In this document: positions 28,001 through 42,200 of the stretch, piece after piece | Layout of the letters: the number at the start of each line of letters is the position of its first letter | Position numbering within the stretch: position 1 is the first letter of the stretch | Origin: Sphaerodactylus townsendi | Taxonomy: Eukaryota | Direction of reading: 5' to 3' | Length of the DNA: 64,000 bases | NCBI RefSeq assembly: GCF_021028975.2 | Contig: NC_059428.1 | Span: forward strand, 149,482,001 to 149,546,000 | Notes under the pieces: model-generated | Databases searched by the model: none | Seen by the model: only the letters and a program-made list of their open reading frames with translations | What the model was told of the DNA's origin: nothing | Program-made: the position numbers and the translations under genes

Positions 28001-30004
28001 GCAAGAGCAGACATCCCCTCTCCTGCTGCAAGCAAGGGGGAGTTCAGAACACAAAGGCAGCCCCCTTCCCTCCAACCCTTTATTTCAATCTCTGGGTCAA
28101 TGCCATCCACGCTGCTGAATCTTTTTATCCACCCCACTCCACTCCACTCCACCCCACCGCCCACACACACACACACACACAATGACCAAAGACTTCAATT
28201 TCCAGGCTGGCAATAAAGCAAATTGACGCAACACAGACAGGTGGGAATCCAAAGTGCCTGCAGCTGATAAGGTTACTTCTGCAAAGCCACTCTTGAAGAA
28301 CCACAGGCTTGCACTTTATTGTATAGACAGCCAGGACACACTTCACATCCCTCAACCTGACTTGTCTGCTCCAAAGCAGCACCGCCAAGGAAGAAAAGCA
28401 AGCATTCCAGAAGCTGCACCTGAATGCCAGGTGGATCTCTCTGGAGGGACAGGTATGCAAGCCAGGGGCCACCTTTTACCATGACCCACTACAGCTTTGA
28501 CAGTGCCTCCATTAGTCTGACAGACAGAAGCCACAGGAGGGGGGGGGGGTATCTCTGGACCACCCTCTCTTCCCATTCACAGCCATGCAGGCAAGGAAAA
28601 GAAATACCTGGGTTTTAAAAGTCTCTTCGATGTCTGCGCTGAGCGTGCTCCACTTATCAGCTTCCTGGAGCGACTCAGCTGCGAGCTGCATCTTGGACTT
28701 CACGTGATCCAGTTCCACCAACACCTGGGATAGTAGCAGTAGTGGAAGTCTTTATTGGCATAAACATATTAATAAAGTACAGACCATAAGATACAGAAAG
28801 AGCCAAAAACACAAATCGCTTCGGCTTTAAAAGCTCTAACAACAGACATAAAAGTCAAATAAACAATATTGTAATATTACAAACCATTTAATGAGCTAAT
28901 CTATAATATTTAATTAAAAAATTAGCTACATTCGCACAAACAGTAGGATCAGGATTGTCTAAGATTAAAGGGATCTCAAGAGTATCAGTTAATTGATTAT
29001 ATAAAAATGGAGTAAGGAGAGACTGGTTCATCCTAACTTTAGCAAATCTTGGACAGTGGAAGAAAATGTGATCGAGCATCTCAGTGTGGCCTGAGTTACG
29101 TGGGCATAGTCTTCTTGGTTGGCCTATTTGTTGGTATCTACCATACAGAAGCACAGAGGGCATAATATTAAATCGGGCAAGAGGCATAGCTCTTCTTTGT
29201 GTCGAATTTAAAAGATTAGCTATGTGCCCTTGCTCTAGGGGGAATGAGCAGAGTTAAGGGGGAACATGTTTTCCTAGCGGCAACTATCATATCATGATAC
29301 TCTTGTTCTTGAAACGTAGTTTTCAAACAACTATATGCCTCAGATGGAGTGAGAGAATACAATGAATCTAATGAAAGGCCGATAGTACCATTTTTTTTCC
29401 TGCGACAGAGAGAACAATTGGTGGTGGTGACACATGAAACAGATCCTCAGCGACACCAGTCCCCAGGATAGGTGCCTCGGTGCCCTCCCCCTCCAGTACC
29501 TGCATGGACTGTGCTGTGTCCTGCTCCAGCCTTTGGATGTCTTCCCTCACCAAAACCATCTGTTCCTTCAGAAAGGTTGCCTCTTGCTTCAGGGCCTCCA
29601 CCTCCCGCAGGACTCGGGGCATGCTCTGCAGCGCTTGGTGGCTCGTCTCTGCGGAAAGAAGTGGCAGAGGTGGTCAGGCACTGCAAAGCCTCGTTTTGTA
29701 GGAACCACCGGAGCGACAGAGGCTGGGACTGGAAACAGGCTGCCTCCAGACTGTCAGGAAGACAGCCCTGCAAGGACACAGAGGCACGCTGTGTGTATGT
29801 GTGTGGGGGAGGGGAGGGCACACTCTACAGCTCCTCACCTTCCACTGCTTTGTTGACCTCTTGGATAAAAAGCTGCAGCTTCATCACCAGGGTGGCGGCG
29901 TGGGCATCCACCTTGCCAGGCGCCTCCTGCTGCACTGCTCGGAAGGCCCCATTCACCCAGGCCTTCACCTCAAAGTCCTCCGCCAGGAATTTGGAGAAGT
30001 CCAT
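16079..30004 (-). CDS. COG7: Conserved oligomeric Golgi complex subunit 7, ~767 aa, 17 coding exons
   Basis: Exons (high to low) 30004-29839, 29648-29500, 28724-28608, 27925-27757, 25755-25673, 24595-24473, 22498-22300, 21000-20873, 20390-20236, 19887-19771, 19303-19238, 18885-18702, 17845-17708, 17582-17499, 17219-17105, 16529-16386, 16245-16079; 2304 nt in frame. Starts [21 protein letters not shown]; contains [21 protein letters not shown] and [18 protein letters not shown]. Confidence 0.95.
16805..17089 (-). mobile_element. Squam3-like SINE
   Basis: Same consensus, (AAG)n tail on +. Confidence 0.8.
21036..21108. repeat. Perfect 35-bp tandem duplication
   Basis: CTTCGCCATTTCTATGGCACTTATTTATTCAGGAT twice. 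Confidence 0.9.
24887..25184 (+). mobile_element. Squam3-like SINE, full length
   Basis: A/B boxes through (CTT)n tail. Confidence 0.85.
26230..26448. mobile_element. Penelope-like pLTR palindrome centred on GGATCC
   Basis: ~90-bp inverted arms about 26320-26325; ends ..GTGAAAACCTTTGACAATA. Confidence 0.75.
26323..26365 (+). ncRNA. Minimal type I hammerhead ribozyme motif (Penelope-type)
   Basis: TCCT-CTGAAGA-T-GCCAGC..GCAGGT-GAAAC-GTC-AGGA: stem I TCCT/AGGA, core CUGANGA and GAAA, palindromic ACGU stem III, predicted cleavage after C26361. Expression and activity unknown. Confidence 0.6.
27150..27370. mobile_element. Penelope-like pLTR palindrome, rearranged, hammerhead core mutated
   Basis: Two tandem CTGAAGATGCCAGC after GGATC; GAAAC changed to AAAAC. 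Confidence 0.7.
28728..29398 (-). mobile_element. 5'-truncated non-LTR retrotransposon (RTE-X-like ORF2 C-terminus) at the COG7 exon 3 acceptor
   Basis: AT-rich; encodes [25 protein letters not shown] (C-terminal zinc-knuckle region); 3' end AATAAA plus (CTA)-like tail; flanked by CCTG/CCTG. Clade assignment by recall. Confidence 0.8.
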
Positions 30005-39233: not shown

Positions 39234-42200
39234 TCAGCCACACAAGGCCCTTCGTATCCGCGTCCGAACTTCTCCACGGCCCAAGGAGACCATCATTTCG
39301 GCAACGGCTGGCCCTTGCTAAAACACAGAAGAGAGTCACCACACGTGCAGAGACACGGGAACCTTTTCTGGTTCTCAAGATCCAAGTGGGTGAACTTGGG
39401 AGTTTGCTAACTTTCTGGGCAGAAAAGTCAAGGCCAGCAGCAATGAAAAATACCTCCTGGCAGCAGCAGTGGCATTTGCTCCAATGCCATGTGGGGCAGC
39501 TCACGACGTAGTGGTTAAGAGCAGGTGCACTCTAATCTGGAGAAACCAGGTTTGATTCCCCGCTCTGCCGCTTGAGCTGTGGAGGCTTATCTGGTGAACT
39601 AGATTAACTTGTGCACTCCCACACATGCCAGTTGGGTGACCTTGGGCTAGTCGCAGCTCTACAGAGCTCTCCCAGCCCCACCTACCTCACCTACCTTGTT
39701 GTGAGGGGGGAAGGGAAAGGAGTTTGCAAGCCCCTTTGAGTCTCCTACAGGAGAGAAAGGGAGGATATAAATCCAACTCTTCTCCTCCTCCTCCTCCTCG
39801 CTATCATCCTCACAAGACTGAAGTGGAGAGGTAGCTGAAATTTTGGCAGAACCACGACTGGCACGTGCGCCAAGCAGGCTTATCGTTACCCTCTTCCAAA
39901 GATACTGGAAGACTTTTTTTAAAAAAACGGCAATCACACCAAACATAGCTGAGCCAGGACGACTGTGCAGTTCCATAAACCACCTGATAAATCATTTTGG
40001 AAGAGGAAGGTTTGAAGCGGGGACTCACTTGCTGGCCACTGAGGGCCATGCGGAGGAGCTTCATCATGATGCTGAACTGGGTGCCTTTGACCTGCTCTGG
40101 CAGCTGGCGCAAGTCTCTGTTCAGCTCTTCCATAGTCAGGGCAGCTGCCGGGCGATCCAACAACCTAAATCCAAATCCAAATCCAAAACCTAGCTATTGT
40201 GGGCTTAAAACCGAGGTGCAAAAGCAATTTCAAATACAATAAAAAGATCATTATTTAACTCAACTCTGCATAATACACCGAAGCAAAACATACGCCGCCC
40301 AACAGCTTCAGATATTTCCACACTAGAGCTATTTAGAAGCTTAGCCATTTTTGTTTTATCAGAGAGGAGCATAAATCCTGTAAATAACACAGTTCTCAGA
40401 ATTGGTTCCTGATGTTGTTGTACTTTTGAACAATGGAGCAGGAATATGAGAAAGTGTTACAGTTGTATCCAGGACAGAATTGATGGAAGCACGGCGTTTC
40501 ATGCCTTGTGGAATACCAGAGAATAGACCTTGCAGAAGATGCTGCTTTGACGGAAGAGTTTACACCTTACGCTCTTGGTCATGACCCAGTCCTGCTATTG
40601 TGAATTAATAGAAGTTGTTGCAGATATATAGCAGGGCTAGTTTTCTGAGGGATAATCCCAAAGACTATTGGAGAGCAAGAGCTTTGTGCTTTGCTCAGGA
40701 GAAATTGGTACTCTTGATCAAATAATCTAGACTTTAAGCGATGGTAAATCTCCGGAGCGGTGAGCATTTGTAGGGCCTCCCAAGAGAATCCAACAACCTT
40801 TGCAAGGAGGGAGAACCAGACACCACTCACCACAGGGCAGCATCCCGCCCAACACGAAAAGGTATCCTTACACCTCGCAAAGGTGTGCACAGGTGGGATA
40901 AATGCCAGATAAAATTCACTCTGCTCTGGGAGTCATACTAAGCCAAGGAGCACTGAAAGAAAGCCAACCTCTGAGACAGAGGAGGCTGAGCAGTACCCGG
41001 GGATGCACCCGCTTACCCAAGGACCAGCCGGCCTATCTCATCTGCCTCTGGAGAAATGGCTCGCAGCTCTTCGAAAGGCACCGTGGGGCGGATCCATAGG
41101 AAAGCATACTTGGGTGACACCAGATCCTGGAGACGGCTGATGTGACCCTGGCAGAGGAAGGAGAGACAGTAGACCGGGAGTCCCCGGCCTTTTTCAGCCT
41201 GTGGGCAACTTTGGAACCCTGACTATTGTGGTTGTGGACACAACCACAAAATGGCAGCCACAAGAGGTGGAGTCAGCTGCAAAATGGCAGCCACAAGGGG
41301 TAGAGTCAGCTGCAAAATGGCAGCCACAAGAAGTGGAGTCAGCTGCAAAATGTAAAAAAAAATCAGCAATAAAGGTTCTCCATAACTCTAAAAGTATCTC
41401 AGACAAGAGCTCTGCTTAACAGGAATGCCTTTTTAAATTACCAGATTGTTTACTTTTCTTGCTTACACACAGATTATTATCAGTCATGCAGTGAAGATCC
41501 TTGTGCTGTGGCGGCACCCGCTGCCTGAAGCAATTAAAAAAACCCCCGTGCACAGCCAATGAGAAGCCGTGCAGGCCAAAAGCACCCGCCCACTTTCTAA
41601 AAACGCTTGGTGGGCGCCATGAAAGGTGCTGGTCAGTGCCACGGCTCCCCTGGGTGCCACGTTGGGGGCCCCCACAATAGATAGTCAGGAGATAGACTAG
41701 GCAGGGTTGTTTCTGGCCAAGCAGAGGGGACCCTGCGTGGCAACTGCGCCAATGCGCAGGCTGTAGGGGTATCTAAAAGGGAAACCCGGACAGCATTTGG
41801 CAGAGGTCACCCCCTCTCCCCAATCTGACTTACCCTTCTCAGCAAAAGCACCTGTTCCACATAAGAGGGCTCGAGAACCCCTCTGTCCATCAACTGCTCC
41901 CCATAGACCTGCTCCGCAGCTGCCAGCACCTCTGCAATTAGGCTGGGCCGTCGCCTCTCGTCCCCAATCTGCTGGGCCAGGTGGATTCTGGGTAAACACA
42001 GAGCACATTCAAGCAACCTTTAAAAATGCAGCAGCAGCAGCAGCAGCTCACAGAGAGGATGAAGGGACTTTTGGCAGGGCCAGTAGCAGACCTGCACGGA
42101 CCACCCTTCCTTAGCTCCACCGCAGCTGGGGCCTCGGCTGCTCTGGCAGAAGAATTGGGGAGGAAGATGAAGGTGGGGGCTTCCACGAGGAAAGCAGACG

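Follow-up and report, generated by a model that had tools for sequence, protein, structure and literature searches.

A stretch of 64,000 nucleotides (nt) from the lizard Sphaerodactylus townsendi (contig NC_059428.1, positions 149,482,001 to 149,546,000; hereafter the window, in which all coordinates are counted) is GC-rich and gene-dense. Two of its genes, COG7 and EARS2, both on the minus strand, carry just ahead of an exon the 5′-truncated 3′ end of a long interspersed nuclear element (LINE). COG7 is recognised by Pfam family PF10191 on its exons 1, 2 and 3, and EARS2 by PF00749 (tRNA-synt_1c) on two exons upstream of its insert. Insert 1 lies in COG7 (28740-29398) and insert 2 in EARS2 (40167-40787, 621 bp); both are in the sense orientation, and their 3′ ends are found at an AG|G acceptor, that of COG7 exon 3 (28724) and that of an EARS2 exon (40164), respectively. 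At its 5′ end, too, each insert adjoins a sequence that resembles an acceptor, has the better pyrimidine tract and is probably the original one. An earlier note on this DNA, made from the sequence alone, had described both inserts as sense-oriented and ending exactly at an acceptor AG|G; coordinates and orientation were right, while the 3′ boundary in COG7 is not exact to the base, and the acceptor-like sequences at the 5′ ends had escaped that note. In EARS2, the insertion is recent and took place 10 bases inside the exon, and its target-site duplication copied the acceptor AG together with the first 10 exon bases (-2 to +10).

The EARS2 locus can be read base by base. The exon upstream of the insert (41017-41150, with 41150 as a provisional 5′ limit) is an open frame ending in ...LVLG with the donor gg|gtaagc, and is followed by the original intron of 219 nt (40798-41016), which ends in the original acceptor ttctccctccttgcaaAG and is contiguous with the exon in the empty sites of two other organisms (runs X4 and X7, see below). 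Before the insert, the sequence reads ttctccctccttgcaaAG|GTTGTTGGAT, and the old acceptor AG plus 10 exon bases form the 5′ copy of a 12-bp target-site duplication, AGGTTGTTGGAT (40788-40799). Insert 2 then comprises an ORF2 (second open reading frame) remnant down to approximately 40582, decayed sequence, AGGTTTTGG at 40191 and a (GGATTT)3 tail at 40184-40167, directly followed by AG|G, where the same 12 bases AGGTTGTTGGAT appear again as the 3′ copy (40155-40166; 12/12 identical, 40788-40799 against 40166-40155). It is the AG of this second copy (40166-40165) that, as acceptor, keeps EARS2 in the correct frame: the exon behind it (40029-40164) has a translation ending in ...LSGQQ, and its frame is continuous with that of the upstream exon.

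Contigs of four sequencing runs (X2, X4, X5 and X7, representing organisms A, B, C and E, respectively) were aligned to 39500-41500. Two contigs, one of 878 nt from organism B (4 differences) and one of 869 nt from organism E (approximately 4% diverged), carry an empty EARS2 site: they cover 39764/39766-40154 and then run straight into 40788-41276 with a single copy of the 12-mer, so that what is missing is exactly 633 bp (40155-40787), that is, the LINE plus one copy of the duplication. By our own count, 3 of the 4 differences between the EARS2 exon (40029-40164) and organism E fall at third codon positions. The contigs of organism A show 0-1 differences and span both junctions of insert 2, and given this near-identity organism A is the species or sample of the window. 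In organism C, the contig stops at 40787 with 30 unaligned letters. The site is thus empty in organisms B and E and filled in A, and the insertion is therefore recent. An assembly artefact in which repeats were misplaced at exon borders has in its favour that the family of insert 2 is present in high copy, at 100-5000x the depth of the flanks and in all four organisms; against it, independent X2 contigs span both junctions, and the contigs of B and E lack precisely the LINE and a single copy of the duplication, which makes such an error wholly improbable. Just downstream of the EARS2 exon (39507-39790) lies a very high-copy repeat resembling a short interspersed nuclear element (SINE), with a summed contig depth of 10^6-10^7 in all four organisms as compared to 20-77 on single-copy flanks.

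The reading frame of insert 2 is fully decayed after approximately 70 codons, and since the insertion is nevertheless very young, it probably stems from a non-coding copy that was mobilised in trans. The 3′ two-thirds of the ORF2 remnant (40167-40580) are decayed in all frames and have lost the Cys/His motif in spite of the recent insertion. Depth along insert 2 is uneven, being highest at 40639-40772 and near zero at 40505-40571. Homologue searches with the insert 2 ORF and with the EARS2 exon returned no candidates, the EARS2 exons of 44-45 residues gave no Pfam match, and PDB searches with two EARS2 exons yielded nothing useful.

In COG7, exon 2 (29500-29648) ends in ...ATGCAG|gt, with the Pfam profile at 65-105 on 29500-29622, and exon 3 (28608-28724) starts with GTGTTGGTGGAA, with the profile at 107-144 from residue 2. 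As the COG7 profile is unbroken across both exons (65-105 in exon 2, 106/107-144 in exon 3), 29500|28724 is the true splice junction. Between exon 2 and the LINE there is a complete-looking short intron of 100 nt (29400-29499), with a GT at 29499-29498, the pyrimidine tract ttgttctctctgtcgc and an AG at 29401-29400; it ends in ttgttctctctgtcgcag|G (more fully, ttgttctctctgtcgcAG|G), with a pyrimidine fraction of 0.75 and one yUnAy at -36. On these sequence features, 29400-29499 probably represents intron 2 of COG7 as it was before the insertion, acceptor included. Insert 1 starts somewhere between 29401 and 29395, and only from K-N-G-T (29395) onward can its sequence be assigned to the LINE coding frame. 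It contains the ORF2 C-terminus (approximately 185 codons with one frameshift), a 3′ untranslated region (UTR) and the conserved end ATGCCAATAAAG at 28761-28750, then ACTTCCACTA, and reaches 28740 at least and approximately 28728 at most, before cag|G. AGG at its 5′ junction is at most a candidate microhomology.

The 3′ limit of insert 1 depends on a period-3 (ACT)n-like stretch after AATAAAG (28728-28749; ACT TCC ACT ACT GCT ACT ATC C), which is probably the microsatellite tail of the LINE, although the final bases of the stretch may instead be part of the duplication. A squamate relative, L011, carries GACTTCCCACTA behind its tail, and comparison with the tail of insert 1 indicates that the LINE sequence extends to at least 28740, because ACTTCCACTA recurs behind the L011 tail. 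This recurrence also led us to reject a LINE end at AATAAAG followed by 25 nt of host intron. TACTATC was likewise rejected as the duplication of insert 1, since its 5′ copy would be LINE coding sequence (T-I-G).

Three readings of the COG7 insertion can be envisaged. In the first, a 10-bp duplication has decayed to an 8/10 match between CTGTCGCAGG (29399-29408, including the old AG|G) and CTATCCCAGG (28724-28733, including the acceptor now in frame and exon base +1); in the second, the duplication is as short as (C)AGG and the tail correspondingly longer; in the third, the LINE would end 15 nt before the acceptor without any duplication. A boundary insertion of either of the first two types would imply an empty site ...tctctgtcgcag|GTGTTGG, whereas the third implies an original ...gtcgc joined to ctgctactatcccag|G. 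The third needs two coincidences, namely a textbook acceptor arising by chance at the junction and a chance resemblance of the flanks, and a boundary insertion with a decayed or a short duplication is what we prefer, with reasonable confidence. A more distant squamate has a COG7 intron 2 of 237 nt free of LINEs, which fits all three readings. In a search of the protein collection for close relatives whose read-through ORFs might hold the COG7 empty site, only distant orthologues were found, and there was no exact match to COG7 exon 1 on record in the protein collection.

Several points weigh against a boundary insertion in COG7. The candidate duplication matches at 8/10, the 3′ boundary is not pinned to the base, and no empty site was obtained; two acceptor-like sequences rich in pyrimidines would be expected to match to some extent anyway; and a LINE end at 28740 plus 15 nt of original intron, with no duplication, also yields a natural-looking COG7 intron. 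In a broader alternative, both inserts are ordinary intronic LINE fragments in very short introns, singled out by the reader's eye, with the COG7 insert merely 15-25 nt upstream of the acceptor. With original introns of only approximately 100-120 nt and 219 nt, no insert could end far from an acceptor, the boundary in COG7 is not fixed, and most LINE copies are short 3′ ends, among which similar lengths are not rare. Nevertheless, we judge coincidence unlikely, as the EARS2 insertion point is placed inside the exon, at +10, by direct evidence, the COG7 5′ junction is a textbook acceptor exactly at the first bases of the LINE, and both targets have a motif of 9-10 nt in common.

The two elements are distant relatives. 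The best protein relatives of both inserts are squamate reverse-transcriptase proteins, and both align to squamate LINE ORF2 downstream of the RVT_1 domain, at residues 375 and 374 of the 551 of one such protein (P0002). This place is approximately 145 residues past RVT_1, at a conserved K-x-G-T-I-G-(I/L)-S-L-(D/E)-S-L motif; neither insert contains anything upstream of ORF2 residue ~370 of P0002, and both have intact 3′ ends with a tail. The LINE-coded sequence starts approximately 5 codons earlier in insert 1, in agreement with the earlier note, according to which both begin within a few codons of the same ORF2 position. Its further claim that the two are independent events is borne out as well: blastn detected no DNA similarity between the inserts, or between them and any other part of the window, they share 36% amino-acid identity over the first 50 codons (E 1.8e-7), and they belong to different families. 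No further copies of the inserts were found in the 64-kb window by blastn, and tblastn with 49 LINE proteins returned the two inserts only. The nearest relatives of the window's LINE proteins and of the COG7 exon in protein searches are in lizards and snakes, namely Podarcis, Phrynocephalus, Anolis sagrei, Elgaria and Python, and a metagenome scan with the insert 1 ORF gave no relative.

A near full-length relative, L003, which is 41% identical to insert 1, contains an ORF1-like frame, RVT_1 and a C-terminal Cys/His motif, together with candidate APE-endonuclease matches (Exo_endo_phos and Exo_endo_phos_2) just below the curated Pfam cut-offs. The conserved 3′ end ATGCCAATAAAG(GT), followed by a microsatellite, is common to L003, L004 and L011, and insert 1 carries it exactly; L007 breaks off at ATGCCA within it. 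The microsatellite differs from element to element, being (GTT)5 in L003, (ATTGAA)4 in L011, (TTCA)3 in L009 and L010, (TGAT)n in L008 and (GGATTT)3 in insert 2, whose 3′ UTR is different from the ATGCCAATAAAG-type end. A conserved 3′ end with short tandem repeats is an L2-like style, and any assignment to that clade would be one by style alone; in the PDB comparison, L1 and R2, the only LINEs there, score alike. The flank of L003 at 4690-4966 resembles, on our own reading of the sequence, the N-terminal region of an antisense CR1-type reverse transcriptase, and L003 thus looks to have been inserted into another LINE.

Besides their position in ORF2, the two inserts have their targets in common. 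These read AG|GTGTTGGTGG in COG7 and AG|GTTGTTGGAT in EARS2, sharing AGGT(G/T)TGTTGG, and AGGT[GT]{1,2}TTGG occurs, with both strands of the window counted, at only three host sites, two of which lie directly downstream of these inserts. The tail region of insert 2 itself contains AGGTTTTGG. At position 2985 on the minus strand lies the sole other host occurrence of AGGTGTTGG in the window, with no LINE end before it. The shared motif hints at a target choice guided by sequence, and not at recognition of splice signals. Where insert 2 begins, the GGAT that closes the duplication is in frame with the LINE motif TIG(I/L)SL and supplies its conserved glycine, which fits microhomology-mediated joining, and the nearly shared truncation point may reflect such 5′-junction microhomology. 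Rough post hoc estimates put the chance of both inserts lying on a boundary, given these introns, at ~1%, and that of a shared truncation point at ~2-5%. This is more than chance easily gives, but there are only two cases, and in COG7 the 3′ boundary is not exact to the base. Survivorship alone does not explain the boundary position either, because the interior of an intron has more tolerated sites than its last bases.

Some observations speak against guidance by the target sequence. The shared motif was defined after both sites had been seen; the tails differ between the families, and that of insert 1 is unlike its target, so tail-target pairing cannot explain both inserts; and the sequence behind the tail is not AGG in L003, L008, L010, L011 or a third, short 3′ end of a related LINE in the window (fragment 3, 3476-3723, minus strand), which consists of ATGCCATTCAAGGT and a TTGTA-like tail and represents a variant 3′ end. 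The same facts bear on a stronger proposal, true homing, in which a LINE group prefers 3′ splice sites (pyrimidine tract, AG|G) in sense and spreads in an introner-like manner by lengthening introns. It would account for the fact that, of the related 3′ ends counted in 64 kb (three to five), 2 are on acceptors; with a short COG7 duplication the first nick would fall just before AGG in both cases, and pyrimidine tracts belong to the few T-rich patches of this GC-rich region. On the other side, the sample is two with one boundary uncertain, the families differ in tail and are only 36% identical, no AGG stands behind the tails of the relatives just listed, and neither fragment 3 nor a related motif at 47343 is at an exon. 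We hence consider homing quite unlikely, and give equally little credence to a squamate LINE lineage preferring pyrimidine tract-AG|GT(K)TTGG sites sense-wise, in which duplication and U-rich tail would regularly rebuild the acceptor. The clade-wide AG|G preference suggested in the earlier note finds no backing among the related elements of other squamates, whereas its remark that the third fragment is not at a splice site is correct.

Fragment 3 lies away from splice sites, between the arms of a 62-nt inverted repeat (3331-3392 and 3724-3782, 84-97% complementary), an inverted duplication of flanking sequence around a LINE 3′ end. A similar architecture is seen at 47210-47430, where a CTACCAATAAAGACTACTTAAC motif (47354-47343, minus strand) is located in a 109-nt loop between 56-nt inverted arms that are 86% complementary.

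The model that we regard as probable, with moderate confidence, is that of two independent target-primed reverse transcription events, guided by sequence, in which the duplications copied the acceptors. Two squamate LINE families, only distantly related, would each have contributed a 5′-truncated 3′ end that inserted sense-wise on an intron-exon boundary. Such LINEs encode a reverse transcriptase, a putative endonuclease of the APE type and, at the C-terminus, a CCHC-like motif, and they terminate in a conserved 3′ end with a short microsatellite behind it. Staggered nicks straddling the boundary would cause the target-site duplication to copy the acceptor, over -2 to +10 in EARS2, as seen against the empty sites, and over -9 to +1, or only (C)AG|G, in COG7 as presumed. 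Each gene would then have its old acceptor, with branch region and pyrimidine tract, at the 5′ end of the insert and a rebuilt acceptor at the 3′ end, for which the LINE 3′ UTR and tail would have to supply the branch point and a U/Y-rich tract; in effect, the introns would be longer by 633 bp (EARS2) and approximately 675 bp (COG7). Landing on the boundary would most likely follow from a sequence-guided choice of look-alike AGGT(G/T)TGTTGG sites and the usual 5′ microhomology, with splicing signals not being sensed. Such guidance could be exerted by the preference of the endonuclease, or the 3′ end could pair with the nicked strand; AG|GT would belong to the preferred sequence and at the same time coincide with the acceptor consensus. 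The proposal of the earlier note that tail and duplication together rebuild an acceptor accordingly stands for EARS2, where there are empty sites and a 12-bp duplication holding AG|G and 10 exon bases, and is only plausible for COG7, with its 8/10 candidate.

Whether the rebuilt acceptors work well is a separate question. As judged from the reading frames, the correct protein would come from the rebuilt acceptor only, in both genes. The evidence of the tracts tells against efficient use: the pyrimidine fraction of old versus rebuilt acceptor is 0.75 vs 0.69 in COG7 and 0.81 vs 0.44 in EARS2, AGs are present at -27 and -31 ahead of the rebuilt EARS2 acceptor, and splicing to the old AGs leads to a stop after 19-21 codons. 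Correct splicing is thus not assured, because the old acceptors look stronger and lead to early stops. Recursive splicing via the old acceptors was rejected, as no GT-type donor is regenerated after them. The alternatives are sufficiently frequent use of the rebuilt acceptors or weakened alleles in this animal, a possibility that the youth of the EARS2 insertion keeps alive.

In the latter case, the EARS2 insertion, and perhaps that in COG7, would be a young, mildly or strongly harmful allele that weakens splicing, an explanation compatible with the boundary mechanism and one that we consider possible, though on balance doubtful. Consistent with it, the insertion is absent from an organism only ~0.5% diverged, the rebuilt acceptor of EARS2 follows a weak pyrimidine tract and has AGs ahead of it, the old one is intact and leads to an early stop, and the contigs are compatible with a heterozygous EARS2 insertion, a point that also weighs against the preferred model. 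On the other hand, two junction contigs carry all the flank depth in X2 and no empty-site contig is listed there, the animal would be heavily burdened by two alleles of this sort in essential genes 11 kb from each other, and the candidate duplication of insert 1 has diverged, suggesting persistence. The suggestion in the earlier note that such elements may be uniquely tolerated at acceptors is not borne out: in EARS2 the rebuilt tract is poor (0.44 vs 0.81), and the insertion dates from so recently that a mildly harmful allele is conceivable.

The surroundings of both genes add some context. Between 28000 and 47000 the gene order is COG7 (minus), PLK1 (plus, from 32033), EARS2 (minus) and a UBFD1-like ORF (plus, from 46363); the gene between COG7 and EARS2 we take to be PLK1, on our own reading of an N-terminal kinase ORF at 32033, and the spacing of COG7 and PLK1 is tighter in the window than in human 16p12. 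A palindromic element recurs at 30909-31835, 44405-44657 and 46419-46900, with recurring ORF translations (…GFVVQEHLDSRRLQTP…) and several copies in intergenic and promoter regions.

Among known cases, the merle SINE of dogs comes closest. In PMEL/SILV, this element sits at the intron 10/exon 11 acceptor with a 15-bp duplication that holds the acceptor, its tail forms the pyrimidine tract, and splicing chooses the original or a cryptic site (PMC7349775). As in EARS2, the acceptor is duplicated at an intron-exon boundary; boundary insertion with a duplicated acceptor is thus a known kind of event, to which EARS2 belongs, its duplication holding the original acceptor. The merle SINE, however, is antisense, and the length of its poly(T) sets a visible phenotype, whereas here sense LINE 3′ ends with microsatellite tails are found in two neighbouring lizard genes read from DNA alone. 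Introners provide a second comparison, since the duplication made at their insertion supplies a splice-site copy that allows the inserted DNA to be spliced out. They create new introns within exons and are present in many near-identical copies, while in our two cases ordinary truncated LINEs would have lengthened an existing intron, the EARS2 empty site already having its intron. L2-type "stringent" LINEs, such as eel UnaL2 and zebrafish ZfL2, have a conserved 3′ end and short tandem-repeat tails; the elements described here resemble them in their conserved 3′ terminus, a microsatellite that differs by family and heavy 5′ truncation, a likeness in style and not a phylogenetic placement. In truncated human L1 insertions, whose 5′ ends are joined by microhomology, truncation occurs at the place that allows pairing with the target end, and insert 2 is comparable in that its 5′ junction overlaps the LINE-like GGAT with the end of the duplication, at one junction only.

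EARS2 offers a clean natural example, complete with its empty site, of a retrotransposon that entered a coding exon within its first few bases and left the gene, an essential one, still readable, because the target-site duplication carries the acceptor, and it illustrates one route by which introns can be extended at their 3′ end. Should splicing be impaired by the insertion, the sequenced animal would carry a candidate for a harmful allele of a gene encoding a mitochondrial tRNA synthetase. If the pattern were family-wide, it would amount to an introner-like process in vertebrates, by which elements lengthen introns at the acceptor end and escape selection, and would provide a testable target rule for a poorly studied group of LINEs.

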